Of a stretch of 64,000 nucleotides of DNA, positions 15,194 to 61,700 are shown one piece after another. This DNA comes from Trichoplax adhaerens. Lineage: Eukaryota > Animalia > Placozoa. The notes below the pieces were generated by a model. That model searched no databases. It was given only the letters and a program-made list of their open reading frames with translations, and was not told where the DNA came from. Location: contig NW_002060943.1 of the NCBI RefSeq assembly GCF_000150275.1, forward strand, positions 9,017,070 through 9,081,069, in the 5' to 3' direction. The position numbers were made by a program, and so were the translations under genes. Every line of letters begins with the position of its first letter. Within the stretch, counting starts at the first letter, position 1.

Positions 15194-15289
15194 GTCTGAA
15201 GTCTTCAAAAGTACCCCAATGCTAATAGGCAGAATCAGCAAAAAGCGTGAACGGATTAGCAAGCTGCAAAAGCTGTAAAGTAAAAAGGA

Positions 15290-16205
15290 CAACTGTGTAC
15301 AGTACAGTACCGTACCAGGGCTGGTAAGAGAAATACGGTACAGTACAGTACAGTATAGTACAGTACTGTACTGTACTGTATCACCAGCGAGGGTGCGACT
15401 ATGGGTTCGACATCTTGCAGCGTACAGTACAGTACAGTACAGTACATATGTACAGTACTGTACACTGTATAATACAGTACAGTACTGTACAACAACTACG
15501 GTAAGGCTCACAATGCAAGACTATAGTACCGCACACTGTACTGTACAGTGTACTGTACAGTACTGTACAACAACTGCTGTAAGGCTCACAGTGCAGGACT
15601 ACAGTACGTACAGTACTGTACTGTACAGTGTACAGTACTGTACAGTATTGTACACTGTACAGTACTGTAGAATTTTCTTCTACGCAGTACTGTACTGTAT
15701 CACCAGCGAGAGTGCGACTATGGATTCGACTTGGGGCGACATCTTGCAGCGTACAGTACAGTACATATGTACACTGTACAGTACGTTACACTGTATGGTA
15801 CAGTACAGTACAGTACTGTACTGTACGGTACAACAACTATGGTAAGGCTCACAATGCAGGACTACAGTACTTACTAGCCTACAGTACGTACAGTACAGTA
15901 CTGTACCGTATTGTAGAATTTTCTTCTACGCTCTACGCTGTACTGTAGTCTCTCCTTTTAAGGTCTACTATGATACGCGAGTGGAATACTGTATACTGTA
16001 CTGTACACTAGAGACCCTCTATAGTACAGTACAGTAAAGCTCACAAGGCAGGACTACAGTGCTACAGCACAGTACTTACTAGCCTACAGTAGCCCATACT
16101 GTCAAGGAAGTACTGTAGAATTGACTGTACACTGTAGTCTCTCCTTTTAAGGTCTCTACTACATCTTACAGTACACTAACTGTTATACTGTACAGTGTAC
16201 AGTAT
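15290..16205. promoter_or_regulatory. (CAGTA/TACTG)n island with internal duplications; candidate bidirectional promoter FAH <-> FOPNL
   Basis: Dense tacag/ctgta pentamers between the divergent ATGs at 15193 (-) and 16251 (+), with duplicated modules at 15368-15530 and 15686-15870. Confidence 0.75.
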
Positions 16206-16250
16206 ATTAGTGATATATCGCCAGTTGATTGGACAGACAATATTGGCGGG

Positions 16251-17991
16251 ATGGCAAACGTGGACGAGTTGACGAATGGTTTGTGCATTATAGAATAGAT
16301 TATAGATTATATATGTCATATATACTGTATGTATATTAATACGATATAGACCTACAGTAGATATTGTGTATATTTATTTATGAAACTAAAAAATTCAATT
16401 TCATTCAGGTTCAATTTATCAGCTGTCAGCTAACTAAGCAACTATACCATACAATATATAGCAATGGACAACAAATGAAATGATTAGAAATAGAATTTGC
16501 TTTTAATTGACGCTCATTATGTTATTATTGACAGTGCTTTGGTATACTGTACCTATACACGTATTTCATCAGATACGTAGTTTCGTGGAGGACGATGCTT
16601 ACATTGTAGAAAGAGATAGCTGCATCAGGGTAGCAACAGCATTAGCAAGTTATAATATATATCTTAAACTTTATTTACAATAGTGGTGAAGGACACGCTG
16701 GTGAATCGAGGTGTTTTAGGCCAATTAAAAGCAAGGATAAGAGCAGAAGTCTACAAAGCTTTAGACAATCAGGTTAGATCAGCCCCCGTTCAATTGCTGA
16801 TGGCTACACTATTATACACTTACTGTATACTACATGTACGCATTCCAGTACATGGTCATTTTTATTTTATATCAACTTACAATGAAGTAACTTAGCAATG
16901 TCGAGTATCTTGGATACGTATTTTAATTAATTAGTATAATCAACTTTTAACATGACAAAGCTCGTCAATCTTGTATCTACTGTATTATCTTTATAAGTCT
17001 GAAACTACAGCTATTTATGCGACACTAGGAGGTACCAAAGCCAAAGCTGCCTGCCGAAAATGTTTTAATAAACGAATTAATCAGGGAATATCTGGAATAT
17101 AATAACTACAAGTACACCGAATCGGTGCTGATAGCTGGTAATTTCAACTCTTACTTTTCTAGTAGTCCACAACTTACAGTAGTAAATGTACACACGCCCT
17201 TTGCAACAGATTTCACACAAGTTTAGCAATTAATGAATTATACACAGAAATGATTGTAACTGATAGTTAATTTAGGCCATAATTGGCACTACGACTATGT
17301 AGTCATACTGAAAATGTAGACGTCTAAACTGTTTGATGTTACTTCAACTTCTCTTTATGCTACTAGAATCTGATCAGCCGCAAAAATCACTAGGTAGAAG
17401 TTTCGTTATGGATGAACTAAATATTGCTCAGGATATGCTCGAACCTAGCGGTAGAATGTAAGTTCATCCCTTGCTGACGTTACTCATAAGCTAACTACAG
17501 TATATGGATATGATTGTAGTTTTCTAATACTTGACCCAATTCTATAGGCCTTTGTTGTACAACATTATATCTTATTTTATGAAAGTAAAACCGTTTCATG
17601 AACACTCAACCGATGAAGGAGTTTTAGGAAATAGACAGAATGCTTATAAAATCCTAGGTAGGCTAAAATTGAATGCCAAACGTCATGCGAATATAAATAT
17701 CGATTAAATACTCCAATTAATGTAGTGTTGAATCGAATGAATCATAGTATATACTCTACACAGAACTCATCCTGTTTGTAATATGTTAATAATATCATGC
17801 TAATTTTATTGACTATGCACCTGACGGTGGAATAACGTTCTTAGTTACTAGTTAGTAGCGATTTATCATTATAGTAATGCCTTAAAATGTATGACATTTA
17901 TTATTTAGGAGGTCAAACGAGAGATGAAACCTCATCGGATCTTCATTCTTTCAGTCGCTTAGGGCCTTCCACTATAAGTAATAATAATTAG
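16251..17991 (+). CDS. FOPNL: FOP N-terminal-like / centrosomal protein 20 (FOR20), LisH-type, 6 coding exons
   Basis: MANVDELTN-VVKDTLVNRGVLGQLKARIRAEVYKALD-EVPKPKLPAENVLINELIREYLEYNNYKYTESVLIAES...PLLYNII matches the FOPNL/CEP20 pattern (LKDTLEKKGVLGHLKARIRAEVF; ENLLINELIREYLEFNKYKYTASVL). Exon phases are consistent through to TAG 17989-17991. Confidence 0.92.
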
Positions 17992-18925
17992 GGGTAACCA
18001 GCATTGTTAGATTGATAATACGAATAAGTAAATGTAAAAATTGTTATACTGTTGTACATTTTTAAGCTTTTCGTGACGCACTTCTCATTTGTTTGAGTTT
18101 TGGTCATTACATGTACATGTACATTCCCTGATATTATTCAAGTTCTAGACACAATTATACGTGTGTCGTTATAGTAAATACCTAGAATGTGCGCGAATAT
18201 GTACCTAAAAGTTTGCAGTAAACGCACTGGTTATTATTAAGCAATGATGGAAAACCTTGAAAAATTTTAGCTATTTTTAATCTTTCGCTAATTTAAATTT
18301 ATTTACTATCTTAACATTAATTTTTTTTTCAATATTGTCTTGATGTAAAACTTATAATGCACGTAAAAAATTGCCGTATTGTTATCATAAGACGTGAAAG
18401 TCGATAGCTCAATACAATTTCACCCACGAAAGAGTGAAATTCTGCTACATTGAAATACATCAATAGAGTTATTCAACTGTTGTGGAATAATACTGTAGCT
18501 TACAATGGAAAGCCGATGAAAGGTGTTCGATTGACTGCAGTTAGTTTCGTCTTTAGTTACGCAACCTTCTGAAATTAAACTTTTTGCAACGCTTACGAAT
18601 TGATTTCTTGAACGCTTTTAAATGTATGCCTTTTAGGCCAAATCTAAAAAGTAGCAAATGCATGCAAATAACTGCTTTCATTACTACTACATCATCCCAT
18701 ATCTTCAGATTCCGGGGCAATGGTGCCTTACCAAGATAACAATTAATGTTAATATCTTTTTCAATAGTTATCTGAAGGCAGATAGTAACGTTGCATCCTT
18801 CTTAAAGCATGTTCAATTATAAATCGTTTTAATATTTACTTATCAATAGTTTACAATAATACATTAACATCGAAAATTTAAAGGAAAGATAATGTTGAGT
18901 GAATACAGCAAAAAAAATATTAAGT

Positions 18926-21853: not shown

Positions 21854-22009
21854 TCTGAAATTTCAATCAGTGTTCAGTCTTAGTGCTCCGATATCTGAAC
21901 TGTAAATTAAGTTAATCCAAGGAACTTTTTATTTTACCGTTAATAAATTAATTACAAAAAATACAGTGCTGTAAATAGCGCTGTAATGATTAAAATGTTC
22001 TAATAAAAT

Positions 22010-23030
22010 GCAGTACGTACAGTATAGGGAAATAGCAGCGTGGACTCCTGATGACTCGCACAACTGCTGCTACTAATGTACTGTCGAGGTTTACGAGGTA
22101 GAGTACAGTAGACTAATACTGTAACGTAATTTAGTGCACTTGTACGGCTCAGCTCAATCAATGTACAGTACTGTATGTAGACCTGAGAAAGGTTCGGTCC
22201 GGTTCGGTTCAATACCTTTATGATCTACAGTATGTTTGTACAGTATGTACTGTACAGTACGATAGTACGATAGTTTATGATACTGGTACTGTACAGTACT
22301 GTACACTGTGTACAGTACAGTATGGAGAACAAATACAGAACGTACTGAACTGTACGAAACCTACAGTACAGTACGCAGTGATATCGTAGAATAGTACTGT
22401 ACTGTCAGTCAGTCAGTCAGTATGGTTTGTCTATACGAAACCTACAGTACCGCACAGTACACCGTGATATCGTAGAATAGTCAGTGTACTGTACTGTACT
22501 TGTCAGTCAGTCAGTCAGTCAGTACGGTTTGTCGCTAACCGTGTACTGTTCAACATCTTACAAACGCCATACTGTACAATGAAGCGTTTTGTAATGTGAT
22601 CCATCTAAAATTATCCAATCGTTCAATGCGTTAGCGTTATCGGTAGCGCAAAGCTACGTCATAGATTGATCTTTACTGTTAGGGATGTTATTGGTCTTGT
22701 TTTCTTGGAGTAATCATGCCCAGATTAGTGAGTCAATACTGACCATCGACCAGGGACTTCTAAAGACTAATATAGTATTAGACTTACTGTACAAGTCTCT
22801 GGCCGGATACTGTACTGGAATTTTCTTTATTAAGTCCGAATACAGTACAGTACAGTATAAATACTACTGTACACTCAGTGTACAGTATAATACTACAGTA
22901 CTGTACACTGTACAGTAGTCACAGAGGTAAGAAAAAAACCCCCGTACTTTATTGTACTGTTCTGTGTACAGTACGGTAGTGGTCACGAGTGTACTGTGCA
23001 CTGTAAAGTACAGTACTTATTACTGTAAGC
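22010..23030. promoter_or_regulatory. (CAGTA/TACTG)n island; candidate bidirectional promoter SMU1 <-> LRMDA-like
   Basis: Dense pentamer runs between the ATGs at 21853 (-) and 23226 (+). Contains (GGTTC)n, (CAGT)n and an ~80-100-bp tandem duplication. Confidence 0.75.
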
Positions 23031-23225
23031 GACGGACATCGGGGTGGCTGGAACTTTCGTAATCCAAAGTTAAACATTATAAAACGTAGCCATTATTATA
23101 TTGACAAAGTTTCATAGTAACGATTACGAAAGTAATGCAGAAGGAGAGCAGCCCATATTCGTTACAGGAACTGTCCTTGTTGATGATGATCGTCATAGCC
23201 TTGTAGTACAGTAAAGTAGAAATAG

Positions 23226-26072: not shown

Positions 26073-29000
26073 TTACTTGCCACGAGATTTCAAATTTATG
26101 TATACAATTCCAAAGACTGTAGATATGAAATAAACTCCGCAAGTCCACCACGTAAAAAATGACATTATACCTCTCAGAATATCTTTGGAAAAGATCGTGT
26201 GCAGTGGTCTAAAAGCTATGGTATGACTTCCTTGCAGTAACTCTGATGAATTAAGAAATTTCTCTAATAATCTAAAAAAAACCGATGAACTACTTTCAAC
26301 CTCAATAATCTTAAATGTCTCATCCGCCATCCACGAATATCCACCTGGAAGTGACAGAAAATTAAAAGCCTCACAAATAATTTATTTCATATATAAGTCT
26401 ACGATAATTATATATATAAATATACGTAACTAGTTGAAATAGAACAGCAACAGTGCATCGATTACCTAATGCCTTCAGCAGCAAAGTCAGATCGAAAATA
26501 ATAATTACAGGCGCAATGTGTTGCGTTGCTGCGATGCAGAGATAGTGAAAGACGTGATTGATCTGTAATTATGACAACAGATATAAGTTAGCGTCGATCG
26601 ACTCTAATGCGTTGTATCATCAGATTTTATCAATCGTATTGCTCTACGATGTAAGGAATGGACAATGTATATCAAGGAAAACATACTAATACATCTACAT
26701 TACATTACATTAAAGTGTGCATACAATTAACGAATTGATATTTTTTAAAATTACCGCCTTCCTAAATTCAAGGTTAGTAATTTGCTGTACTTCTTTCTGA
26801 AAATTTTCTGCCTTGTCTAAGGCAGTGTCTAAATGTGCTTGCAAGTAAGATTTTATAGAGCTGAACCGTAGGATACTCAAAAGAATTAATATTCCCAGTC
26901 TCGACGTATTAAATGTTGCATCTTCAACACTAAAAAAATGGCTATGTGAGTCCTCGAGAAAAATAAAATTCGATAATTAATCTATAGGCTTACAAAATTC
27001 TTGATTGGTTTACATTTGTGGCTACCATGGTATCTCGGGCTAAGGGTTTGACCCAAGACAGAATAACAATGAAAGGTAATAGCAGGCTGATTTGTGCATT
27101 TAACCTTGAAAGTAAGGTACGCGATCGTTATTACGATTAACTACTTTATACCACCTATAAAATTTATAGTAAATACCATGTAGCCGATGACCAGTCTCTG
27201 ACAATTTTCGAGTGCATTTTCGCCAATCTTAAGCTCGGAAAGAGGAAGACAGACCCAATTATAGCAGAAAGCACAGAAATGATGATCTTGACTAAAATGG
27301 GAGCTGCTGGGGTACTATACAACGTAAATTATAAATCTACTTTTAGCAATATTAACTTTAATCACCAGCATCACACAGTATATAATGTGCAATGCAGTAT
27401 ATAGCAGTTGCGCTTTTAAACCTTGAATTAATCAATCGGGTGGTATTTCTATTGAGAGAATCATAAACTGCCATGAGAAAAGGAAATAGATTAGTAAATG
27501 CCACACTTAATTCCCCTTTAATTTCTTCAAATAGGGAGTAAGTAAGAAAAAATTGTAAACTCCGATTTCTTACCATATGATAAACCAAACTCTAAAATAG
27601 TTTCATCTACTGTTAAGACAACCATGCAAAGCAAGAAATAAACTGAAGCAAAGATAATACACATCGAGCTTTCACCGCCGTCACCAATTCTGAAATATAC
27701 CAACGTCAGAGAGGAAAGCGATTTTCTATTATGCAACTTAAGTTAAAATAAACATACTCTGATCTTTTCTGCTACACAGCAAAAACACACAAGAAATATA
27801 CTCGTTGCCCAGAAAAGTAAATACGAATGAAACTCCTAGTGTAATATTATGTACAATCCACATATTCGTTAAGTAAGTCTATTTAATCAATTCAGGATAC
27901 AATGCAAAAAACGCTGAGAGCAGTAACCAAACGATGCTGAGATTCAGTTCATTTCCATAAGCAGCCGGTTTAAGCCAAAAGTATAGTTCCGATATTGAAA
28001 ATATCATTAGGGAGTATATAAAAAAATCAACTATCCAAATGAAATCTGGGCTGTAGTATAAAGTCAATATTTCGGCTGTATTAGCCTATTCTGACATGAA
28101 TGGACAAGGCTATTTGTTAGTTACCATCCAGCAATGTAAATGTTTTATCATTGCAACACAATTGTAACTTAAATCAATATTTAACATTCTGACCTCCGTG
28201 GGATAAACGTCGTAGGAAGCATTCTTAGGTAACTTAAATTCCTTAGGTACAGCTCGTGAATTAAGTTTTTTCCTGCATGGATTTAATCATTAGCAAATAA
28301 TATCATAAAATTATATATAATCGACAAGTATAGTTTATTAATTTATCATCATAAAGCCCATGATTGATCTAATTGCAATCGGATGTTAAAATTTGCTTTA
28401 TATTAACAAAATGTGCATAGTTTACAATATCTTGTACCTTTCCCTCTGTGTTAATTTATATTTACTCTTTGCAGTACTAGAGAGTTCTCTATTACTATTG
28501 GTGCAGATATCCCATAATGCTTCGTCTGGAGGACATATGTATCGAATAAGTCTGCATAAAATGTAAATCACAGGTTAAAAGTGTAATCAAGGACTTACGC
28601 GCAGCTTCCTGTTGTCCTTTACTCTAATGAACGTATAGTTCAAGGACTGTAACGTAATAAGTGAATTTGATATCTTAGATTACGTCTTATACTGTACGAG
28701 CATACCCTCGTCCAATAATCCACCGTCCAAATGAATAATAAGGACTAAGTCGTCGAATTAGAAAGGAAGCTAGTACGGTTGTCACCAATTGAAAGCCTAG
28801 CAAGGCCTGCAGTTATAATTAAATAGCAAAGTAAGTATATTGGTTTAGTTCAACGATCAGAGATTTCATCAAGGACCTCTTAAAAGTCCGGATTAGTACA
28901 CATGTCATTGTTGAACGATTACCCTATTGACGATGCACCAATGCTACTTGCAGTGCATTACACCACTATCACATACCTAAAGATCTTCATGGTCTGGACT

Positions 29001-29272
29001 TTGCGATTCTACTGTACACCGGCTGTACAAATACAGTACAATTTGCAATATACAGCACAACAGCTAAACGTACACTACTATATCTTACTTTATAGTACTA
29101 TTCAATCAAACCAGAGATTTCTGCAATAATTAATTAATTTTTAAAAGGTCGTGGCTAAACCTAAATTAATAAATACACAGTAGCTACTTCTACAGAGTGG
29201 ACCTTTACAATGACATAATGCGGGATTAACAGATGGAATTGCATATTCTCATGTTATCTTTAAGCTTACCAT
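26073..29272 (-). CDS. TMEM161: Transmembrane protein 161 family
   Basis: ATG-only first coding exon (ATG|GTAAGC at 29270-29272), then ALLGFQLVTTVLAS...YSFGRW..., YFRIGDGGESSMC, DETILEFGL, FPSLRLAKMH, VILSWVKPLARD, KSYLQAHL and LRGIMSFFTWW, collinear with TMEM161A/B. Confidence 0.93.
27726..27900 (-). other. Probable U12-type intron in TMEM161
   Basis: Donor GTATCCTGA, branch-like TATTTTAACT about 15 nt before the AG, and no strong pyrimidine tract. Splicing restores AFFAL|KSLSSLT. Confidence 0.65.
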
Positions 29273-29419
29273 CACTATGCTCTCTACGTTGCAGCGTTTG
29301 CTTTATACGGATTTGCGCTTTTGAACAGGTAAAAGCCGGAGCTAGCAACACTTATTTCATTTCAATTTCGCAGAAAATCAGTAAAAAATTAACCACTTTT
29401 AGGTGGACAGCATAGCAGA

Positions 29420-29540
29420 GTACTCTTGCAGTCTTTGTACTCTACTGTACAGACTGTACAGTACACTGTGTACAGTATAGTACTGTACTGTACAGTACAA
29501 GTCACTACAATGTACTGTACTGTACAGTACAGTATAATGG
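29420..29540. promoter_or_regulatory. (CAGTA/TACTG)n island upstream of TMEM161
   Basis: ctactgtacagactgtacagtacactgtgtacagtatagtactgtactgtacagtaca... lying 150-270 bp upstream of the ATG at 29272. Confidence 0.7.
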
Positions 29541-31089
29541 GCTACAAGAAATTCCATCTCTCAAGAGTATCCTAACCAAAAGGAGTTTTTGGCTACACTG
29601 TTGCAACAAAAATTTTTAAAGCATGGCGATAGCACTCGGCAATGTGTAAAAATAGAACTATGGCATGCACATTGTACAGTAGGCTACTATCAGTAGCCCC
29701 AGTCAAAATACATCTAGTGATTTAATGCAAAATGCAGAGGGGCAATGCGCGGCAGAGATTTACAGTAAGCGTGTCGCTCCACATGACTCAATGTTGTGTC
29801 CGTGTAAAAAGGAATAAAGCCTAATCTATGATAAATGCCTGGCTGTCAAATTACAGCACTAAACTGGGTAAATTTGCATACTGTAATGCATACAGCACAG
29901 TGTAGAAGACAAATGACCTTTTTCAATAAGATAATAATAAAAAAATTACATACCCTAACTGTTTACATCATAGTGAATGAATGATATTATCCCGCTATGC
30001 AGCAAGTATACCGAGCCCCATTGATTTAGACCTTTAGGTCTTTATAACCTAACATGCACGAGTATATATATTCGCATATTTAGCCTTGCTTAAAAAACAT
30101 GCGATATGTACACCTGCTTGCACTAGATGTAATAGTCGAAATCTACAAGTCAAAGAGTAACGATTGATAAGACTACAGCTATAACCAGGATCTCGTAGCA
30201 TTCATAGACAATGCATATACTGCATATATAATGGTAGCTGTTTGCGTAAAAGTTTCGAATAAATATTACGAAACAGTAGTCACTTGTAGCACCCATAACA
30301 GTAAATTAAATTAAAACACGCGTAAAGTACATTTCAGTAATGATAATCCAGGCTCTAAGCTTTTGATATGCAATACTCTACTGTTATAGTGAGGTTAGTG
30401 ACCATGTCCAGATGTTCTGAATCACTGTAGGCCACAAACGATTTTAATTTCTTAATATATAAAATCGCAACTTGAATTTGCCACATACCCAACTTATCTT
30501 TGAAAGCAACAAATTTCAATAGATAAATTTATTATAACCGCACAAAGCAAATACATTTCGATAAAAATCTATAAACGGAGATAAATTCAAAGTGAAATCT
30601 CAGCCCATAAACTCATGATGTACTCCAAAAGTCTTTAATCTTAAATAAACTGTTCCTAATGAATCTTCACCTTACAGAATAATAAATTATATTTGCTATG
30701 TTGCACATACAGTGGAGTATATCATTAATAAAGTTACAGTTATGACTACGTGTATAATATTACTCAAGAATATAGTAGTACTTAGAAAATAAATCATAAA
30801 AATCTTTTTACCAAGTAGAGTAAAAATATACGTTCAAAATTCTGTATAAGGTCTTTTGCCTCCTTCTTGATTGCAATAGCCCGAACTATTCAATTGGTAC
30901 TGCTGTATTCTACTTCGTAGCAAATCATGATGCGTGAATAATCATGACAACTTCTTAAATTGGACTATTACTGCAAAATGCTGATATGAAGTACTGTACT
31001 TAGTATGCTGGACATTTACATATAATGATACTAAAATAAAAGTAGTACCTTGAAAAGATTCGCATTTATAACCTTCCATAATTTAATTT

Positions 31090-33124
31090 TTATGGATCCC
31101 TACTTATACATTTGTCATATACAATTGGATTGTCAACGCAAACTACACTGAAATGCTTCTGGTTCGGATATCTTTTTTTTGTATCAGGACATAAGCATGG
31201 GATTGTTAAATGTTTTTGCCACACCTTACGATCACAATACATTCCAAAAACGTCACGTACTCCTGAATTGACGGTAGCAGTCTTTAGATTCATCAGTCTT
31301 GGAGACACTAACCATCCAGGCTTAGCCTGTAATAACCAAATAAGCAAGATAATCAATACTCAACAAGTGTCTCCTGTTACACTTTTTAATTTCTTATATA
31401 AAGCTTTAATTAATTAAAGTAGTTCAAAATTTTCTAAGTTAAGACAATTAACCTGCAGTATACGTCGCTTCCTGCCGTCACCACTCTTCCCAAGTCCTCT
31501 TTCGCCAATGTGCCACATGCGACCAAGAGTGGGGACCACGACATTATGTCGCCCAGGCCACATCCATGCAATTGCTTCAGACCAATCATTAGTCTTACTT
31601 GCCAAAAACTTTGAATGGTATATTGCTTGCCATATTGAAGCATTAAAAGAGTAAGCCATACCAGGAAAGTAAAGCATAATTCTAAAGTAAATATCAACGT
31701 ATTATTTATACATGAGTGAATAATATCAAAAGCAATCTGTTTATACTAGTACATAATATACGTATAGTACTGTATAACGTTATTTGTCGAATCCTTAGTA
31801 GTTAATATGAGCATTAGCGAAAGAATTGACATCGAAGAATATTCGTAATATTTGATCACTAAAACAATATCTGCAACGCATTACCAGCTTGGCTAACACT
31901 TTAACTGTCTTCAACTTACAATATATACTAATAATTATATATATATATATATATGTATAACATCTATATATTGGATAGCAGCATTAAATTAAAAATAGCC
32001 TTTTACAGTACATGGTTAGTATTAGAAGTACTGCTGCTGCTCATTCAACTGGTAGAGTTAGTTACGGAAGAACCTGATAACGAAGGTATCCGGGTGAGGA
32101 TTTACAAGGTGTTCTCCTGACCATCCTCCCAAACCAACAGCAATCGTGTTCGGATTAGAATTTTTTACTTTTAACATAAACCATATAGCTTTCAAGGCAT
32201 CTTTGGATAGTTCGATATCATCTTCTAAAAATAGAACGTCTCGCTGATATTTATAGCCTAAATCAAAAATATCTAAAAACTGATCATTAGAAAAATACAT
32301 CCACATACCAGTTCATTTACTGATTCATTGTAAAATGCAAGAATATAAACTGTGTATCTAGCAAGCCTCAAACATAAACAATAGTATTATTAACATTATA
32401 TCCTGTTTACCCCAGTACATAAACGTTTACTTATCGTACAGTATCTGCAATTGTTAAAATTACCTGAGCTCTCAAATACTAATCTCATGATATTGTACCA
32501 TTGCCTTTTATACTCTTTAGCGTTGCGTTTATTACTTTCTGTAAGAAATGTCTTGGCTTTACAAAACTTGACATTAGCTATAATGTCCTTTGTTTTTTTT
32601 ACATCTTGAGTTGATACCACGGGAGTTTTTTGACAAGCAAACAAGCAAACGCTGGCAGAACTTAATCCCTCTATTGCCTTCAACGACTTTATTAGCCGTT
32701 CCATATATGCAGGTCGGTAAGAACAAAATATGACAATCGGGATTTTGAAGTTACGAAATTCAAGTTCATTAGAGGTGAGACTTTCACTTTTAATGCTGCT
32801 GGTGCTGGAGTTTTTTACAAGATATGTTGGTGTAGTCTTGGCATTAGGAGAATACTGGTGTTTGACCTTTAATTTACCATTATTCGTGATAGGGGTACTC
32901 TGTACCTTGGTTCCTTGAAACGTCATTCCCACTTCATTTTTCGATGAACCTTCCTTATTATGCTTGTCTAAATGCATGACAATTTCGTCATTTTTTCTTT
33001 CCACAACGTTTGTTGTTGCATATTTGGAGGTAATTTTTCGATAAAGTGTTGTCGGTACTAGTAAGCAAGTGATTATCAGTAATCCTTGCAAAAGCCGTGT
33101 ACTTTTCATTAGTACGCCTGACAT
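31090..33124 (-). CDS. Type II membrane GT-A glycosyltransferase, distantly GnT-I/GnT-II/POMGNT1-like (paralog 1, 4 coding exons)
   Basis: N-terminal anchor LLQGLLIITCLLVPTTLY, a stem region, IPIVIFCSYRPAYMERLIKSL, VLFLEDDIELSKD (DxD-like EDD), YFPGMAYSFNASIW, VVPTLGRMWHIGERG and a Cys-rich tail ending DKCISRDP*. Confidence 0.8.
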
Positions 33125-33134
33125 CTATTCACAG

Positions 33135-33870
33135 TTTATACAGTAGTACAGTGATGAAAGCTACAATTAAATTATTATTTTATCGCGTTGGAAATTAGAA
33201 ACCATCTTTCCTGCCAATTAATTCGACAGTTGCACAAACTGGTACAGTACAGTACCAGTTCTCTTCTAACAGAAACGTGTACTGTACTGTACACAAGTGC
33301 AGTTACGTCACGGTCCCTTTTGACTACGTCAAAAGGAAAACGCTGCAAAGCATCGGCTCCTGCTAGACCTGAGAACGGTTCGGTTCGGATCGTTACGATC
33401 TATGCCTCCACCACTACAATACAGTACTGTACAGTACAGCATCATGGATCAGAGAGTCACCCACCATTTGCGTGTGTGGACTGGACATTCCTCGGACTGT
33501 CGGACATTGTCCAGTACAGTACTGTACACTGTACAATTTCGCTTTGGACTGTAGACGATATTGTCTTTTAGACTGATATTTTAGAATGAGCATTACGAGT
33601 AGCGTACAGTAATTGTATCAACTTGTATAGAAGCTTAGCTCTCTAGCTACATAATGGTATACGGTATAAAGTATAGTAATTTTACGTTAGTTTCAGTAAT
33701 ATTTTTTCCCTTTTTCGCAGTCTGAAAGAAAATAAAAACATCGTACTGTAGACAGAGCCATTGGACCAAGCCACTTCTGAATTCCTTTTTCCCATTAAAC
33801 CTCTTATTACAGTACTTTACGCGTACTTTTTACATTGTACTGTACTGTATTGTACTGTACAAAAGTACAA
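33135..33870. promoter_or_regulatory. (CAGTA/TACTG)n island; candidate bidirectional promoter GT paralog 1 <-> GTF2A2
   Basis: Pentamer runs at 33241-33300, 33415-33440, 33510-33535 and 33835-33870 between the ATGs at 33124 (-) and 34006 (+). Confidence 0.7.
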
Positions 33871-34005
33871 CAGCGACTGCGCACTGCTGGACATTTATCC
33901 TTTTTCTTTCTTTTTGTTGTTACCATTTGGCTTCGCGATTTTTAAACGTTAAGCCGATAAACCTTGAATTTTTTCAAGCCAAGACTAAAGAAATTGGTAA
34001 AAAGA

Positions 34006-36138
34006 ATGAGTTATCAGCTTTACAGAAATACGACGTTAGGTCAGAGTTTACAGGAAACGTTAGAGGAACTGATACAGGTCAGTACGATGGAGATCGTGTT
34101 TGCTTTTCGCATCGCATCTTGAAGCTAAGGGCATGTTATTATTGCATATCGTTATTGCATGTGGCTATCTTGAATTGAGTTCTTGGTCAAGGTTCGAAAA
34201 TCTTGACTTAAATATATAGTATGATTTATGAATATGATCTAGTAGTTTTCAGCTAAATCGAAATCTGCATGCACGCTTGCCTGTGATAGCAACCTCTGCT
34301 ATGCGCAGGGATATAACTGTGCATTGCCCAAAAAAAGAAGCGTGACATTGTCAAAGACTACTATACGTTTACGGTAGAGGTAGACGCTAATTCTGCTATC
34401 TGATCATGCTGTGGTACCTGAAAATGAGAAAAATACGGCACGAGGCAATCATGGATCCCTTTTAGTAGCACGTGATAATGTACCAGATTTTGTTTGTCGA
34501 TAATACTGATATTGTTATGCTGTACTGTATAAAAATCATCTTTAAGGTGGAACAACTAGCATAAATAGCGACGAGATAAATAAGTTACGAGCTCTGTCGG
34601 TATATCCAATAAGGTGGAACAACTAGCATAAATAGCGACGAGATAAATAAGTTACGAGCTCTGTCGGTATATCCAATAAGGTGGAACAACTAGCATAAAT
34701 AGCGACGAGATAAATAAGTTACGAGCTCTATCTGTATATCCAATAGGATCTCGAGCTCTTACAACGTGTTCGATTATACTTACTATACAGTGTACAGTAT
34801 ATTACTGTAGTAATCAAAAGGCGAGATTAGAAATATGTAATGTACAGTATATGCTCTCAATTCATTCTATTTGATCTACAGCGGCCAAGAGTGGACGTGA
34901 ATATGCAACATTGATTGTTATTATCTACTGCGTAAAAGGAACTTTACTGCACACCACTGTTATACACCGCTATGTAGTAGGAAAATAGTAATGAAAAATC
35001 ATTTCAGAATAATAAATCTTAAAAAGTATTCCGCGCCGGTGTCTTTTAGCCGCCACTTGTACAAATACGATTCTGTGATAAATTGCTTTGCACGAATTAT
35101 CGTATATCAATTGATGAATGGTAGCAAATCATACTCGGCGATCTAAAATTGGCCAATATACAGTATATACTGTACGCGTATATAATATAAATTCACTGAG
35201 GTACATGCTATTCATATAGTAGATTTTATTATGATAAAAACTACGAAATCATGATTGCACAATTTATAAGTGAGCGTTCTAGTTGATAATATGTTAATAT
35301 ATATAATAATGGTTTCTTATTTCTACACTTGCTACCTGCTAGTTCACGACAATTTCCATTTTGAGACATACTGCCGACTACAACTAAAAGTCACAGAGAT
35401 GGCTACACGTATTCGTTACTGTAAATGAAAATAATTAAGAACGACAAAATTCTATTTTAATCTCTAGACGCAGCAAATTGATCCTGATTTGGCTTTGATC
35501 GTTCTACTACAATTTGATAAAACTATTAATTCCGCATTAGCAAATCGGTTACGCACTAGAATGTCATTTAAGGTAAGTTTTATATCAGTTAGGAATGCTT
35601 GAAAGTGCTCAACTACTTCACTTTTTTATCGACCAAATTGCTGTGCATGTTTTACTGAAGCAAAATATCTCTTATCCACTACTTTATAAAGTATACTGTA
35701 GTCGTTATACTGTACTAATGAATAATAGTATAGAGTTTTTCTAACTGCAAGAACGATGTATTGATGTTGTGGAAAGAATCGTAGAGTCAAGAAGAATCCT
35801 ATAAGTGTCTTTACAATTTATGCAGTATTAGATATGTACAACACAGTCCACTACGAAATATTTTAATATTATCTTAATCCGCATTTCTAACCCATTGTAA
35901 GTACAGTATTAGCGACGATGAGCAAAAAACTTACAAGGAAATTTAAGCGTTTTCTGCTTCATGTTTTATTTAGGGACATTTACGAACATACAGGTTTTGT
36001 GATAGTGTTTGGACTTTAATTGTTGAAAATGCGGAATTCCGTGAGACCGGAAGCGATACACACTCGTTTAAGGTTGACAAATTGAAAGTAGTTGCTTGTG
36101 ACGGTAAAACAAGTGGCCTAGAATGTAAGGAACTTTAA
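34006..36138 (+). CDS. GTF2A2: Transcription initiation factor IIA gamma (small) subunit
   Basis: [24 protein letters not shown] | [35 protein letters not shown] | [24 protein letters not shown]...[13 protein letters not shown]. The exact C-terminus is ambiguous. Confidence 0.97.
34543..34745 (+). repeat. Tandem repeat, 3 x 67 bp, in GTF2A2 intron 1
   Basis: Unit TAAGGTGGAACAACTAGCATAAATAGCGACGAGATAAATAAGTTACGAGCTCTGTCGGTATATCCAA starts at 34543, 34610 and 34677. The third copy has 2 substitutions. Confidence 0.95.
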
Positions 36139-41895: not shown

Positions 41896-42439
41896 TTTTG
41901 AATTGCACGACCGTTATTGCAGCAAAGGAATGAAATCGTTCAACAGTAAAATTGGAAATGTAGCTAAAATTGAATCAATAAGACGGTGTTACAAAGTTGA
42001 TAGCGTAGTTACAGTATGTATCAAGCACAGCGGTACAATAAGGAGGCAAACTTCAAGATGGAAGGCAAAATCGATCGTGATTTTTTTAGTTTACATAGAT
42101 ATTTTACATCCTATGCAGAACCGCATAATACGAGTACGGTGAGTTGCACGATGGCGTTTGTGATGATCCAGTTGTCTGGCACTATCTAATACTGTCAATC
42201 CCAACCAATTGGTGTCGAAGGTTTCGGCCTTGTACCCAGTTCTATACGAATAAATGTGCTTTGCTTATAGCATGGTATAATTCAGATATTACGATCTATA
42301 ATTCATTTATTTATTAATTAATCAATGAATAAACGCAGACTTAAATCGCTGGGTTAAGAGTGTTTCAAAATCGTGACCTGGATCAGCTCCTACACGATGA
42401 ATCATTATGCAGTCAACAAAGCAACGTTGCAGGTGTGAT

Positions 42440-42870
42440 GTGTACTCAGGTGTCCCGTACCCGACAGAGACTGTTACGGTAACAGTGTTCCTAGCGACTG
42501 TAGTGTACAGTGTACAGTACAAGGGACTTCTAACAGTACTGTACAGTACAGAACTGACGTCTACGGTACTGTACAGTACAGTACTAAACACAACTGCACT
42601 GTAGAATACGGAACGGAATCACATGGATTTGCGATTCCGTTCCGTTCCGTATTCCATACCGTTCCGTCGAAAATACAAAATCTTACAGTACTGTACTGCA
42701 TACTACAGTATTAATTTGCATAGGTTCACAAAATATTTTCTCGGCATACTGTACACACTACTATACAGTACTGTACAGAACTGATATCTACGCTAATGTA
42801 CAGTACTAAACACTACGGACTGTAACTCACTGTACTGTACAGTACAGTACTGTACAGTGTACAGTGTAAT
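42440..42870. promoter_or_regulatory. (CAGTA/TACTG)n island with embedded inverted repeat; candidate bidirectional promoter GT paralog 2 <-> PPIP5K
   Basis: Dense pentamers between the ATGs at 41895 (-) and 43194 (+), with a hairpin at 42604-42654. Confidence 0.72.
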
Positions 42871-43193
42871 GGTGTATTTAATTTCAAAATTTTATTTCAG
42901 AAGCTAGCGCGTACCCAAGTAGAGATTTCTCTTGCTCTACAACTTGTAGTCTTTGGCCCTCAGTATATTACTTTCATATTTTTACAATGGAGAAAATTTC
43001 ATTTCTACGATAATTATCCATCGAACGAGTGGTACACTGATAGCTGCACTCTTTTACTCATAAGATTGTAGTACTGTATTTCTTTCTTAGCAGTTGTTGT
43101 TAATAGATAGTACAATATACGTTCGATAACACTTCCATTCAAGCTTTGCCTTCATTAATTGATTTATATTTAATACGATCGATCTCAGACAAG

Positions 43194-46100
43194 ATGACCG
43201 AGGTAAAAATTATAAAAGTCTTCCTGTACTCTACATGTACTATTAATCAATAACTTCAATTTTATTCATTGTCATACGGTACTACTGTACTTGGAACTAA
43301 GGATATAGTAGCACTGTAAACTCCAATGACTTAGCATAGTTTACATAATGTATTACAACTACAGTTTATGAATGACCGAGACGGAATTAACTTGTAAAAC
43401 CATTCTATGCAATGAAATAATTTAATTTTTAAATTTGAATTTTTAGGACCACTCAATAAGTGGAAATCGTATTGTAATAGGAGTGTGCTCTATGAATAGA
43501 AAAGTAAGTGCTATAACTAGTAACTACAATTACCTACCTCTCTATGAAGCTTGTCTAAAAAAAGTTTCAGAGATTGTATCAAGTTAGTTGTGGCTTTCAA
43601 TTAATATGCACTATCGCATACAATTGTTCAATTATACTGTATATTCATTATTTATCGATTGCAGTTGAATCTAGAGTTGTCGATATTAAGAGTTTTTGTT
43701 ACTATGATACACCATGGACAACCAAATACCATTGTTGTACGGTAGTAGTCTGTGTATTCAAGTATTCAATGCCTACAGGTTATTGGTTATAAGCTGTACG
43801 GATAGACTAAAATTGTACTCTCATTCCTATTCTCTACTTGCATTAAAACTATTTTCCTGTTGATGTAAAGCACACTAGTTTGCAGTACATGTCGTTGTTG
43901 TAGTACTTTTATTTTACTGTTAAAATAAACTTATAAGAGTATCTAAGCTGAACGTAATTTCTGCTTTACTATGACTTCAGTCAAGAGCGAGACCAATGAA
44001 AGAAATACTGAATCGCTTGCGTAAATATGATTCGCTACAAATTATTACCTTCCAAGATGACGTCATTCTTAATGAACCGGTCGAAAAATGGCCCTGTTGT
44101 GATTGCTTGATAGCTTTCTACTCTTCTGGATTTCCCTTGAAGAAGGCGATAGAGTATGCACAGTTACGAAAGCCGTTTCTCCTTAATGATTTAACGATGC
44201 AATACGACTTGATGGACAGGTACGAAAATACTATCTTAAAAATTTCAGGCTATCTAATTGAACTTAACAAGCTCACGTTTGTCCAATTTCCGTATACATT
44301 TTATGCAAATGTTGGATAGAATAAACTTTAATCTGTACGAATTATAAATATGCCCTTTGTAATAATCAATATGTCTTGTTTACAATATCCAGAGCAAAGG
44401 TCTACAGGATTTTAAAAAAACATGAGATACCAATACCTAGATATACCATCTTGGAAAGAAATTTAGACAATGAAAATGATGGTCAGAGTAAGTTTTACTA
44501 TATAAAGACTGTAAACTTATAATTACCTTAACCATGGACTACTAGATATCTAGTAGTCCATTCCCTAACTGATTAAAGCATATGCCCATCTTGTAAATAG
44601 TATCAAAGATAAGTCCAATTAGGAATCCATGGAAAGGTACTAGTTTAGTGTAGACTAGTGAAACCTTTGCTATTTGACCTAAAATCTAGTAGAAAGTGTA
44701 CATCAAGGCACATTTTAGAAATTTGAAGGATGCAGCAATAACATATGCAATAAAGCTAATGTATTAGCTACCTATATTCAGAAAGAATCCTAATTTCCTC
44801 TAATTACTAATAACCCACCAAATCTTATTTATCGTACATCACAATAATAACTTACAGACATTGATGAACTTGAAGATATCTTAAAAGTTAGTGGGGAAAT
44901 ATTCCACAAACCCTTTGTTGAAAAGCCAGTATCGGCTGAAGATCATAATATTGTCATATATTATCCTTCTTCCGCTGGAGGTGGAAGCCAGCGACTATTT
45001 CGTAAGGTTAGCAAGATCCTCTGCAAGTATATTCAATTTCTGCACGCTAAAATTATTAAGGTGCTTAAATTACAGTTCAATATACTTGATTGATGGCCAA
45101 AATTTATATATACTAGATCGGCTCAAAATCAAGTGTTTACAAGCAAGAAAGCCACGTTAGAAGAGATGGGTCATACCTTTACGAGGAATTCATGCCCACA
45201 GAAGGAGTCGATGTTAAGGTACTAGACTTACTTATCCACTTGCATAGCATTGCGCTCAACAAGTACGCAAGAGACTGTATCATTACAGAACAATTACAGC
45301 TTTACAGCGTTATAATAGTGAGGTACTCATATAACTTTAGATCTACACAGTTGGACCAGAATATGCACATGCTGAAGCTCGAAAATCACCAGTAAGTTAC
45401 GACATCACCATTCGAGTAAATTATTGAAAAGCCACTTGTTGTAAACGATTACATTGCCTACGCAAAATTCAGATACAGTATCAAAAAAGTAGCTTTTTTA
45501 TATGTATTTTTATTTAAATAAAATTTAAATTTTTTTACTCACCTTTACAGGCATTAGATGGAGTTGTTGAGAGAGATATACAAGGGAAAGAAGTTCGATA
45601 TCCTATCATTTTGACAGCTGCTGAAAAAACTATTGCCAGAAAAGTGTGTCTAGCGTTTAAGGTGATTTGTAATATTGCAATTGCAAATTAAACTGTTTAG
45701 GAAAACTGACTTCATTGGAATGCGTAACCGCCTTATTGAAATGATTTGTAAAAATTGTAGCAAACTGTTTGCGGTTTTGATTTACTAAGAGCAAACGGTA
45801 AATCGTATGTCTGTGATGTAAATGGCTTTAGCTTCGTCAAAACATCTCAAAAGTATTATAACGACTGTGCACAAATTCTAGGGTAATGACCAATTTTTAT
45901 TTCTATTGCCACAGTACTAATCATAGACATCCTATACTTTAAACAATTGTTTTTTTGTCTTATAGTAATTTAACTGCTAATAGTGTCATTAAATTTTTCC
46001 CTAGACATATGATTTTGTCACATTTCTCACCTCAGCAGCCCATCCCCCTAGTAATATCTCGCAAGGCGGATGATGTACCTTTAAGTATTAAAGTTAAGAA

Positions 46101-49100: not shown

Positions 49101-51598
49101 AACACGAAATAAGCGAAAAGATTTGTCATAATCTTTTTCGGAAGTTGCGAGCTGATTTGCAGCATAACATCTGCTGCGATACGGAGTCTAGTAACAGGCT
49201 CAATCCGAAGTAATTTCAATTATAATCAATACGCAAAAAAATACAACAAGCTTTCGTAGATTTAAAATAGCCAGTTTAACCAGTGTGTTTTAGCTCTGGA
49301 GTAAACTGGTACTAACAACGGATTACTTGACCTATTATAAAATTTGCAAAATAAAAATTAGATACTCCCAAGGTGTCATTACGCCTGATCGGCACGTTCG
49401 GACGCGACTTTATTTTACCAGTGAAAGTCATATCCACACCCTATTATCTGCTATCCGCGATAGCAAATTATGTGATGTAAGAAAAAATTCTACAGCACTG
49501 CAACTACTCATATGTGCCTTTAATAAACTCCGGTTCATAATACTATATCTTTCAGGCGTCTGATAAACAATGGACTAAGTCAATGGAATGTATGGAAGAT
49601 ATCTCTGAATTGAATTATCTGACTCAAATTGTTTTCATGCTGTATGAGGATCCCAGTCAAGATGTTAGTTCGGAACAGAAATATAGAGTTACACTACACT
49701 TTAGTGCAGGAGATCGGCTGCTAGAAGAGCAACTTGGTGAAAAGTCCATTTATAGAAAGGTATCAGAAAATAGTAATTTTAACGATAAAACGTCAGTTAA
49801 AGAGGCTCCTTCCAAAAAAGATGGAACTGATGCTCCTATCGAAAGTAGCACAGATGACAATTCAGGTAAGAAGTTCATATTCACTTTAAATACTGTACAG
49901 TATGTACTGTATGCTGCCAAATAGCGTAATTACTTTACGCAACTTTTAGACTTTTGTGAATGAATGAATGAATGAATTCAGTGGGCCCCACTATTAATTA
50001 ATTTTTTTATCCTCTACTTTTAATTACCATAGTTTTCAAAGCTAGACGCTACTCATCAGATAACGGTTTGTAATACATAAATATTCGGTGAGTCAGTACT
50101 TTTTTCAAGTTTTTATAACACAATTATTATTATAATATTTAATAGACATAGCCAGAATCAGAGCTACTAAAAAAGTGACAGGATATAGCAGTGATGTTTC
50201 GTCATTGCTTGATCAGGCAACCCTTGAACAACCAATCCCAATGAACGGACTTATTGGTGATTAATTTACGCGCTATTATGTTAAAATACATTTTATTCGA
50301 TGTCAATTTTTGAAAATTTTAATTTTTATTAGCGTTATATGGCCCAATTACTGTGGGTCGGTAATTACTGACAATTTTTGGGGTCCCGTAATACCAGTTT
50401 CGCCTATAACCGTCGAAGAATTTAGTCATTTTATATCATTTATAGTCCTTTACCATGATTTATATACTGCGTTTTACCCCTGAAAATAATAGTGGAATAC
50501 AGTAGTTGGACTGCCCCATACGAGTAATACTTATTTATTTTTTTGTTGTTTGTATAAGTGCATCAGTTTTACAGCTTTAGAATGTAGTAACTTTTCCATT
50601 AGCTCGCCATGTTTATATCGTTCATCGTAAATTAATCGGGATATATCACATTATCAGAATTTTCTATATTTAGAATTAAAATTCGTAATGGGTAAAAATA
50701 GTTAAGGTAGTCATAATCAGCATACTGAGACCTACCGATTGGTCTTATAAGTCAATAATTCTACGACTACTATAGTGTATGATACACGCTTAGCAGTCGT
50801 TGCATATGGCGCGCTTGGGTCAAGGACATTTAATGACCACTTCAACATGGCTTCCGTGAGTGTATTAGACTACCATCTTTCTCTTCCTCATTAAATAGAT
50901 GATGATGAGGAGTACGATAGTAGTTTTACAGCAGATAATCTGTGGAAGAAATGCCACGGATTGTGATTATCGATGATTCTAATGGATAATCCACCAAATC
51001 GTCGATTACAAATCATCCATAGGTAAATGGAGAAAAAGGAAAGACATCCAAGATTGAGCAAGGAACCTAACTTCGCTAAAATACCGATCGTTACTGTAAT
51101 ACATATGAGATTCTAGCTTCTCTTTATACAATAGTACCACTGAAACTTTATTTTTCACTTAATTGTTATTATTTTAATGTTAAATGTATTTGCTTCATTC
51201 TGGGCAGAAACAAATCGGTTGTAGTCAATTAAGTAAATTACTATGGGCGTTTCTTTGTATAGGGTTTTTTGTTTTTTGAGTAGATTGTTTTATTTTTAGT
51301 TTAAATTTACACTGTTATGTACGGTGGTGGTCCACGAAAGTTATCATTCTTAATTGAATACTATGTAATACGTTTAGAATACCTAGTATTTTAGTCTTTA
51401 TTTTTCTAAAAGCTACTAACATATATGCCTTGCTATTATTTCTTTTATTTAATTAATCTAGGTGTATCAAGTCAACCTCTAATCCCTACTGTTTATCCTT
51501 TAATGACAATACACAACTCGTTAACACTGAGCCAAGTAAATAGCTTTTTAGAAGCCGCCATAAAATCACAAGATAAATTTTTTGAAGTATTAACTTAA
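43194..51598 (+). CDS. PPIP5K: Inositol hexakisphosphate / diphosphoinositol-pentakisphosphate kinase (Vip1/PPIP5K), >25 exons
   Basis: [117 protein letters not shown], phosphatase motif [38 protein letters not shown] and [16 protein letters not shown]. The last exon is [22 protein letters not shown]. The start and some C-terminal exons are less certain. Confidence 0.96.
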
Positions 51599-51774
51599 TC
51601 CTATTGCTTTATACAGTGTATGGTAATCTGTACTATTATACTGTAATTTTACAATAAGTATTATGCAATGTAATTTAATATAATTAAGAAATAAATACAC
51701 TGATTAATAGTTCTGTAATCCATTGTCGTGCCATATCTGTATATTTTAGATATCAATTGAACTTAGAAATTTAT

Positions 51775-60211: not shown

Positions 60212-61199
60212 TTTATCTATGTTGTAATATTCATTTAATATGTTAGAAATAATTTCTAATCGATAATTTTAATTCCTGATTTAAAAAATAAATTTTAACT
60301 ATTGTTTTTTTAACGTACTCAAAAATTTTGACATACGTATACTGTGCAATGTGCATGTAGTTACTTTTTTACGCTACTACCCAAATTTTTACTCAACAAG
60401 TGCTTGAAAGATATAATTCTATCATTCCTGTACTTATTTATTCAATATCCTATAAATATTAATTCTACCGGTAGACTTGGGCCTTTCCTTCTTATTCGGT
60501 TTTACAGATGGCATTTTCGCTATGATATATTATACACACCAATATATATAATATGGTCTATGTTTTAAATGTCCTACGATTGCAATAAAATATGAGCAGT
60601 TTTAAACATAGGTAGATTAAACCAGATTGGCAAAAATAATAAAATTTCTAGAGACAGAGACTACGCGACGTGTATATCCTAATCATAGTGACATGAGTGA
60701 TACATTAAATTTCATTATCTTTTCGTGCTGCTCTACAGTATAAATAAATAAATTAACTTTTATCCAGATGTTATCGTTATAGTAAGAATACATTTTACGT
60801 ATAGTCGCCATAGGAGAAAGATTGAGTACAATCAATACATCACTTTGTAGTTACCGATAACTTACCCTGTGCCTATTCCTATCTATAACACATACACGAA
60901 ACGATAATGAGTAACGAAATTTGGAGCTAGACTGTATGATGCATACATTTACTCGCATAAGACTATGCATGTAAAATTTAAACTATCGGCTTCTAATTTT
61001 ATTTGGACACTTCTGTAGATAGATATTTTAATTTAAAAAAATCGATTACTATCTTCTATACCTTGATTTTAGTACGGGCATTAGCCATAAATCATCCCTT
61101 ATTCAAATGTTTCAATATTTACCACTGTTAGTATCGATTACTCCGTATTTGCTTGGTGTATTCTGATCGTAAACGTCCGTTTGCCCTGGTCTCTAGTAG

Positions 61200-61700
61200 C
61201 CATAGCAACGATGGTCTAGTTTTATGCACTGTGTTTAGTGTGAATTGTACTGTAGACTTTCTCCTTAAGTACTGTATGATTAAGGTGAAGAGCGACAGCC
61301 CATACAGCGCAGTAGAGAAATTGATGATTGATAGAGACATTGTATAGTCCACGTGTACAGTACAGTACAGTATACATTGTACTGTAGCCCGGATTGTTCG
61401 TAATGACGTACTGTACAATGGTACATACTCTACTGTCCGATACTACAGGTAGTAGTATACAAGATACTATAGTTGTATAATACAGTAGTTCAGCCAAAGT
61501 GAGCCAGCAGACAGACTACCGCTACAGCTAGTGACTTGACTTGACCAGACCGAGTACTGTACTGTAGATCTTGTATCAGAGGGTATGTACTCAGTCGGGA
61601 CTACTTATTCCTAGGTCTTGTACCTATTTGAGTACAGGCGGTGCCCACCTTGAGGGGTACCATGCTTAGTACTGTACGCTGTACAGTACCTGCAGAGCTG
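61200..61700. promoter_or_regulatory. (CAGTA/TACTG)n island; candidate bidirectional promoter MYCBPAP <-> Sel1-repeat gene
   Basis: gtgtacagtacagtacagtatacattgtactgtag (61353-61387), gtactgtacaatgg, agtactgtactgtag and agtactgtacgctgtacagtac lie between the divergent genes. Confidence 0.7.

Follow-up and report, generated by a model that had tools for sequence, protein, structure and literature searches.

Islands of a GTAC-core pentamer at gene starts in Trichoplax adhaerens: placement, anatomy and turnover of the known (ACAGT)n promoter-associated repeat

Why should dense islands of a single pentanucleotide, read as CAGTA on one strand and TACTG on the other, stand where genes begin in Trichoplax adhaerens? 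The question is raised by a 64-kb stretch of the genome of this placozoan (64,000 nucleotides of contig NW_002060943.1 in assembly GCF_000150275.1, positions 9,017,070–9,081,069 of the forward strand), which is referred to here as the window and one of whose proteins (P0017), on the same contig of 13.26 Mb, is TRIADDRAFT_52327 of T. adhaerens. A first-pass annotation, made from the letters alone, had taken the islands for a candidate promoter code. Their association with promoters holds, but it is not new: the islands are the (ACAGT)n promoter-associated repeat of T. adhaerens, in print since 2010 (Wang et al., 2010, Biol Direct 5:18; PMC2871265) and found again in 2026. Our contribution is accordingly one of description and not of discovery, and what it adds is the reading of the repeat around a palindromic core, the rate at which adjacent units flip orientation, the turnover of the arrays by 5-bp units and the persistence of the islands in another placozoan species.

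Wang and coworkers reported ACAGT as the dominant microsatellite of Trichoplax, with 78% of the pentanucleotide repeats, which in turn make up 62% of all microsatellites (PMC2871265). The copies lie upstream of genes (54% within 1 kb and 85% within 5 kb), ACAGT is the top pentamer in expressed sequence tags (ESTs), and the repeat was proposed to be a transcription-factor binding site with an enrichment at housekeeping (translation) genes. The repeat in the window is likewise tandem, hyper-abundant and located within ~1 kb upstream of genes, the properties that define it in that study. Organism, repeat and gene-upstream bias are thus the same; the difference is that a one-direction pentanucleotide microsatellite was described in 2010, whereas we find (GTACW)n arrays (W being A or T) in which 40% of the steps are flips, gathered into islands of 0.2–1 kb that take up bidirectional promoters and are retained in another placozoan species. 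The motif has since been recovered by the Chimaera network trained on T. adhaerens Micro-C data (NAR 2026; PMC12817080), which yielded two repeating motifs, ACGG and ACAGT, and found ACAGT repeats predictive of insulation by in silico attribution. The motif is that of the present islands, and the attribution supports an association of the repeat with insulation at gene starts; anatomy, evolution and relation to transcription start sites (TSSs) lie outside that work. The repeat goes unmentioned in Najle et al. (2023; PMC10580291), and in Eitel et al. (2018; PMC6067683) the string 'ACAGT' occurs once, within a primer.

Across most of the window, CAGTA and TACTG together number 0–5 per 500 bp. 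The counts per 500 bp rise to 20, 33 and 11 over 15001–16500, 27 and 19 over 22001–23000, 10 and 8 over 29001–30000, 9 and 10 over 33001–34000, 20 in 42501–43000 and 10 and 5 over 61001–62000, with a weak rise (7 and 4) over 501–1500. The five most over-represented 5-mers of the window are the five rotations of ACAGT, at 2.4–2.7 times the first-order Markov expectation, and Tandem Repeats Finder places period-5 TACAG/GTACA arrays at each island site. Islands were called from perfect ACAGT-phase runs of at least 8 nt at a density of at least 0.1 per 200 bp. The seven islands obtained occupy 6.6% of the window, of whose ACAGT-phase run bases they account for 71%, and the density of GTAC is 46.7 per kb within them and 4.6 per kb outside (~10-fold). 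Count peaks and calls match the positions at which the first-pass annotation had seen dense CAGTA/TACTG islands, and the weak island that it had proposed at 670–1210 agrees with the small rise in the counts there. Gene starts were located by Pfam matches on single exons, by reading of open reading frames (ORFs) and motifs, and by assembled RNA contigs (placed on 28401–34400). The islands, none of which is assigned a strand, and the genes beside them are as follows.

670–1210, no strand: weak island, upstream of the CLCA-like gene (ATG 328, minus strand).
15244–16272, no strand: island 1, between FAH (ATG 15193, minus strand) and FOPNL (ATG 16251, plus strand).
22006–23073, no strand: island 2, between SMU1 (ATG 21853, minus strand) and the LRR gene (ATG 23226, plus strand).
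29372–29623, no strand: island 3, a one-sided promoter island adjoining on its left the first exon (29269–29394) of TMEM161 (minus strand; further exons 28437–28551 and 28706–28805).
33154–33940, no strand: island 4, between the MGAT2-like gene GT1 (ATG 33124, minus strand) and GTF2A2 (ATG 34006, plus strand; end of exon 1 at 34077).
42446–42936, no strand: island 5, between the MGAT2-like gene GT2 (ATG 41895, minus strand) and PPIP5K (plus strand; exon of the N-terminal domain at 43975–44316).
49811–49992, no strand: small intragenic island inside PPIP5K, the sole island away from a known gene start.
61258–61665, no strand: island 7, between MYCBPAP (putative ATG 61203, minus strand) and the single-exon Sel1-repeat gene (ATG 61959, plus strand).

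The distribution of the islands follows the orientation of the genes. All five head-to-head intervals of the window contain an island, as does the one promoter-bearing tandem interval (that of TMEM161), and none of the four tail-to-tail intervals does; the comparison of promoter-bearing (6/6) with tail-to-tail intervals (0/4) gives a one-sided Fisher p of 0.0048. Six of the seven islands lie 11–550 nt from an ATG or first exon, and at most genes the last array is 46–270 nt from the ATG. At four bidirectional promoters the island takes up 59–86% of the distance from ATG to ATG, so there is not much space for start sites beyond the islands. The statement that each island lies just 5′ of a start codon stands for six of the seven, the exception being the intragenic 49811–49992. 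The five head-to-head pairs named in the first-pass annotation do have islands, but that at 29.4 kb is the one-sided promoter of TMEM161, and the island of the GT1/GTF2A2 pair is 33154–33940 and not 29372–29623; to the right of island 3 is the 3′ end of GT1, whose contigs reach down to 30520.

The islands differ in internal layout. Island 1, which occupies ~86% of the FAH/FOPNL intergenic space, contains a 78-bp higher-order repeat (Tandem Repeats Finder) and duplicated modules, and island 2 has an array-free centre flanked by two array-rich lobes. Island 2 also holds (CAGT)n tetranucleotide runs at 22395–22425 and 22502–22523, a 4-bp variant of the pentamer.

The link to promoters is borne out beyond the window in an independent block of 200 kb elsewhere on the same chromosome, in which 16 raw island calls were obtained and 14 were analysed. 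The switch in GC skew, tried as a way to recognise divergent transcription without annotation, was not informative, and its sign was reversed in this block, so the coding strand was predicted instead by a codon-usage score trained on the exons of the window. By this predictor, five of the 14 islands lie at divergent switches of strand, seven between same-strand segments and none at a convergent switch, two being undetermined. Counted from the side of the switches, an island is present at 5 of 20 predicted divergent and at 0 of 19 predicted convergent ones. With window and block pooled, the difference between divergent and convergent has a p of 0.0005.

The description that fits the arrays best is that of short and degenerate (GTACW)n, with one palindromic GTAC core per 5 bp and an A/T spacer. 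Over 264 kb (the window together with the 200-kb block), the most frequent distance between successive GTACs is 5 bp, and the fifth, or spacer, base is A in 87 cases, T in 85, C in 3 and G in 5; it is thus A or T in 172 of 180, against an expectation of ~33% C or G from base composition. Forward (GTACA)n and reverse (GTACT)n units differ at the spacer alone and are 80% identical in register, so the self-complementary mosaic noted in the first-pass annotation is explained without inversions. The genome-wide figures are pattern counts. The pattern of four cores, GTACWGTACWGTACWGTAC, occurs 6758 times in the genome (105.6 Mb) and its reversed control not once; 15 of these four-core arrays fall in the window, which is 3.7 times the genome average. 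Adjacent spacer pairs genome-wide are AA in 4851 cases, TT in 5064, AT in 3495 and TA in 3225, so that orientation is retained at 59.6% of the steps, significantly more than 50%, and flipped at ~40%. Runs are mostly 1–3 cores long, with a maximum of 10 in the 264 kb. A classical one-direction microsatellite with long arrays was rejected as a description, given this share of same-orientation steps and the short runs. The commonest off-phase junction is GTACACTGTAC (23 copies, 7-bp spacing), which contains TA-CACTG-TA and shifts the phase by 2, yielding a higher-order period of 17 bp.

In composition the islands have 41% GC and an observed/expected (o/e) CpG ratio of 0.77, compared with 32% GC and 0.95 in the rest of the window; CpG is thus not depleted outside the islands. 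Single-strand hairpin potential is strong in some array segments (z of −3.6 to −5.3). An explanation by cruciforms alone is less attractive: some segments do fold strongly, but random spacers would place a mismatch about every 5 bp in long stems.

Orthologues were sought in other placozoans by protein search with the single-exon Sel1 gene and GT1 exon 1 against metagenome and Logan contigs, and those found share 51–74% protein identity with the T. adhaerens proteins. In species 2 (ENA samples ERZ27263980 and ERZ23499115) the identity is 74% for Sel1, 51% for GT1 and 58% for GT2, and an island is present just upstream of the ATG at all three informative loci (contigs L002 and L005, with fewer than 120 nt upstream, were left aside), which are as follows.

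L001, Sel1 orthologue: ATG 637, island 280–450, with 34.6 GTAC per kb upstream and 1.4 elsewhere.
L003, GT1 orthologue: ATG 2284, island 1400–2100, with 29.3 GTAC per kb upstream and 2.4 elsewhere.
L004, GT2 orthologue: ATG 776, island 200–300, with 19.4 GTAC per kb upstream and 2.3 elsewhere.

When four loci from the two other species are taken together, GTAC is 9.8 times as dense upstream as elsewhere. On L003 the head-to-head GTF2A2/GT1 pair is kept, and the only alignable parts of the DNA between the two genes are repeat units. One further species has thus kept the islands across a deep divergence, and a third has all but lost them. The comparison of orthologous promoters that had been suggested for these islands thus came out positive at the three promoters of species 2, and in the third species it yielded only a vestige at GT1/GTF2A2.

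On a shorter timescale, the arrays evolve by gain and loss of 5-bp units, as microsatellites do. Islands 3 and 4 are both present in a close relative ('organism B', DNA-like run X4), in which the array at 33278 has lost 5 nt. Within the 200-kb block, one island of 1.4 kb (L026–L027; G000:C1414:2187009-2188440) consists of three tandem copies of ~485 bp that are 91–93% identical; they differ chiefly by indels within the arrays or next to them, whose lengths are for the most part multiples of 5 nt (5 to 20), and in addition by ~25 substitutions scattered over the remainder. Length change in whole units, the classical mark of a slippage microsatellite, is thus found here, and islands can grow by segmental duplication besides unit slippage.

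What the islands do is a question to which we can offer a graded answer. The reading towards which we lean, at somewhat better than even confidence, is that the arrays act at the DNA level, either as a homotypic cluster of GTAC cores or through their mechanics, keeping promoters open and insulated and seeding bidirectional initiation. The islands, filling the space between divergent, mostly housekeeping genes or the 5′ side of single genes, would act independently of strand as homotypic clusters of palindromic GTAC-core sites. The putative reader would probably be a dimeric or oligomeric factor, or its role would be taken by mechanical properties of the repeat, and the cluster would hold the promoter in an open, insulated state and determine where bidirectional initiation takes place. 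Such a function agrees with the published in silico association between ACAGT repeats and insulation at the starts of genes (PMC12817080). The mechanisms put forward in the first-pass annotation (a platform for one factor, nucleosome exclusion, and anchors for promoter–promoter contacts) stand as proposals, as does the mechanism given here. Function is favoured by the spacer, which varies between A and T but hardly ever becomes C or G, and by the survival of the GTAC core; in species 2, moreover, the islands persist at the same promoters although the DNA between the genes can no longer be aligned.

Several observations weigh on the other side. One island (49811–49992) is intragenic. T. adhaerens and its close relative differ by ~1.3% in island 4 and by 1.4–1.7% in flanking noncoding DNA, a similarity that gives no sign of extra constraint, and rapid turnover of units is also expected of a neutral hypermutable repeat. 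In the third species (L006/L007) the array at the GT1/GTF2A2 promoter is vestigial, with 7 GTAC per kb, and the GT2 contig of that species (L031) shows little array, although it spans just 541 nt upstream, a distance over which T. adhaerens also has no array. The RNA evidence consists of assembled contigs for two transcripts, which cannot fix 5′ ends.

The main rival, less probable in our judgement but far from negligible, treats the islands as a neutral by-product: promoter DNA that is open, transcribed and nucleosome-free would be especially prone to slippage and, the repeat being quasi-palindromic, to repair through hairpins or template switching. Arrays would then form and remain at promoters without having any role, and persistence across species would reflect a lasting mutational bias. 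Much of the turnover described above is in its favour. Indels of 5-nt units occur far faster than change in the flanking unique DNA, divergence across island 4 as a whole is no lower than in its flanks, the GT1/GTF2A2 island has nearly disappeared from the third species, and the hairpin potential of the arrays is strong. Forward and reverse units being 80% identical, strand switching or conversion would moreover scramble the spacer just as observed, with 40% flips. What argues against neutrality is the restriction on that scrambling, since the spacer is A or T in all but eight of 180 cases and the GTAC core survives; the recurrence of islands at three orthologous promoters of a species whose proteins are 51–74% identical and whose intergenic DNA can no longer be aligned; and the choice of ACAGT repeats as insulation-predictive by a network trained on Micro-C (PMC12817080).

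A further reading, which is one specific mode of the favoured explanation and which we hold only tentatively, is that the islands are arrays of initiators. Each sense unit contains CAGT, the core of the arthropod-type initiator TCAGT, and an island would then comprise many weak initiators on both strands and give a broad bidirectional promoter. RNA contigs of GT1 run 100–120 nt past the ATG, to 33222 and 33244, and end at the edge of the array 33243–33258 inside island 4, although as assembled contigs they cannot fix the 5′ end. At this edge, a few nucleotides from the contig ends, the minus-strand sequence is CCAGTTT, which resembles an initiator and fits YYANWYY. The end of the first exon of TMEM161 is 25–50 nt from the array. 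The short distance from the last array to most ATGs leaves little room for TSSs elsewhere, and the repeat is found in ESTs (PMC2871265) and is carried by many RNA-run contigs from other loci. These observations are suggestive of transcription beginning at or within the arrays. They come from two transcripts only; the base at −2 (A) deviates from the initiator consensus, and islands of up to 1 kb far exceed what a core promoter needs. Apparent joints between islands 3 and 4 in the contigs were rejected as junctions, as they come from repeat-sharing contigs of other loci.

The favoured reading can also be put in a stronger form, in which (GTACW)n would be a placozoan-wide promoter/insulator code under selection, read by a dedicated factor for palindromic GTAC cores spaced by 5 bp and replacing CpG islands in a genome that lacks CpG depletion; we regard this form as rather doubtful. 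A candidate reader, named here as a speculation, is a single-copy, transposase-derived Tc1-like protein with helix–turn–helix (HTH) domains and a degenerate DDE_3 domain that is conserved across placozoans, for which TACWGTA would, equally speculatively, be the expected appearance of the ends of the ancestral element. Its gene is the sole DDE_3 (Tc1-like) match in the 105.6-Mb genome, a single-copy ORF of 358 residues (L028:895-1968; G000:C1409:3537595-3538668) with HTH_28, HTH_32 and DDE_3 domains and without convincing terminal inverted repeats (TIRs). The ORF is 100% identical in Trichoplax sp. H2, and two other placozoan samples have a version of equal length with 53–54% identity. Its first catalytic aspartate is lost, being replaced in both other samples as well, and the HTH region is the most conserved. 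From its sequence the product looks like a domesticated transposase. Nothing in this analysis links it to the arrays.

Transposons enter the discussion by a second route. The first-pass annotation had mentioned a transposon-related motif at placozoan promoter hubs, and such a motif exists: the loop anchors of the hubs carry a motif from Mutator TIRs (Kim et al., 2025, Nature; PMC12221973). According to the Chimaera study (PMC12817080), however, it is the ACGG-type motif, which is separate from the ACAGT repeat. The two occur in the same class of promoter (open, H3K4me3-marked and housekeeping) and share some islands. Three islands of the window contain elements that resemble transposon ends.

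22183–22198, plus strand: copy of the 16-mer CTGAGAAMGGTTCGGT in island 2, followed by CGGTT-like pentamers.
33369–33384, plus strand: copy of the 16-mer CTGAGAAMGGTTCGGT in island 4, followed by CGGTT-like pentamers.
42604–42654, no strand: ACGG/CCGT inverted repeat inside island 5 (hairpin z = −3.8).

The 16-mer has 79 exact copies genome-wide, some in close pairs, against none for the reversed control, and its two copies in the window sit in unrelated bidirectional promoters; the element is probably the end of a Mutator-type element tied to promoter hubs. In island 5, a 15-bp inverted repeat of ACGG pentamers (GAATACGGAACGGAA ... TTCCGTTCCGTATTC), with more copies of CCGTTCCGT up to 42667, matches the 'repeating ACGG' motif of the Chimaera paper (PMC12817080); it does not belong to the GTAC arrays and probably represents the transposon-linked motif published for loops and insulation. 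That the arrays themselves are the Mutator terminal repeats at the hub loop anchors of Kim et al. is suggested by the TIR-derived motif at hub promoters (PMC12221973) and by the three islands with transposon-end-like elements, but we consider it very unlikely. ACGG and ACAGT are named as separate motifs (PMC12817080), the ACGG- and CGGTT-type elements are short discrete inserts in just three of the seven islands (2, 4 and 5), and islands with their arrays masked have no module in common beyond within-island tandem duplications and the one 16-mer. On this last ground, islands as copies of a mobile element were rejected; the motif of Kim et al. differs from the arrays in sequence and is transposon-derived, whereas the GTAC arrays are not mobile-element copies.

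Least probable of all is an origin of the arrays as stacked Tc1/mariner excision footprints, in which each cycle at a TA would add CWGTA (5 nt, W random): although TACWGTA is the canonical Sleeping-Beauty-type footprint, is contained in every GTACWGTAC and predicts both the 5-bp unit and a near-random A/T spacer, and although the 23 copies of GTACACTGTAC contain TA-CACTG-TA, the sole DDE_3 match is a fixed single-copy gene without the first catalytic aspartate, only 11 Tc1/mariner fragments and no active transposable element are reported for Trichoplax (PMC2871265), the indels are multi-unit blocks inside tandem duplicates, as from slippage, same-orientation pairs exceed the 50% predicted (59.6%), and tens of thousands of promoter-restricted germline excisions across genera would be needed.

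Among known systems, the islands resemble vertebrate CpG islands, which are likewise a compositional, non-positional mark of housekeeping and bidirectional promoters whose sequence turns over while its place is kept. Membership was rejected, as the o/e ratio of 0.77 in the islands is below the background of 0.95: the GTAC islands lack CpG enrichment and lie in a genome that lacks CpG depletion, and the mechanism of CpG islands is one of methylation protection and CXXC readers. The likeness to CpG islands drawn in the first-pass annotation is therefore an analogy only. For a multimeric factor reading (GTACW)n the nearest precedent is the heat-shock element, a 5-bp modular array (contiguous nGAAn) with units in both orientations that is read by the oligomeric heat-shock factor (HSF); it differs in its core, in having 3–6 units, in being inducible and in having HSF as a known reader. 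Promoter microsatellites that tune chromatin are familiar from yeast promoter repeats and from (GA)n with GAGA factor. These too are unstable tandem repeats concentrated in promoters and varying in unit number; the difference is one of scale, with one palindromic-core pentamer here common to thousands of promoters.

This scale is what makes the islands of general interest. Placozoan genomes are tiny, almost without transposons and without CpG depletion, yet one simple repeat is common to thousands of housekeeping promoters. If functional, it would be a rare lineage-specific, sequence-encoded promoter/insulator mark and would offer a handle on the formation of promoter hubs in an early-branching animal.

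Three further observations concern the surroundings of the islands. The two MGAT2-like (PF05060) glycosyltransferase genes, at 30520–33244 and 39000–41900 on the minus strand, are paralogous; each has its own island and stands head-to-head with a housekeeping gene, and both are kept separate in another placozoan species. The assembly has a gap of 50 N at ~9520–9570 of the window. Downstream of exon 1 of GTF2A2, and probably within its first intron, a 67-bp unit is repeated three times with 98% identity (34543–34745); it is unrelated to the GTAC arrays.

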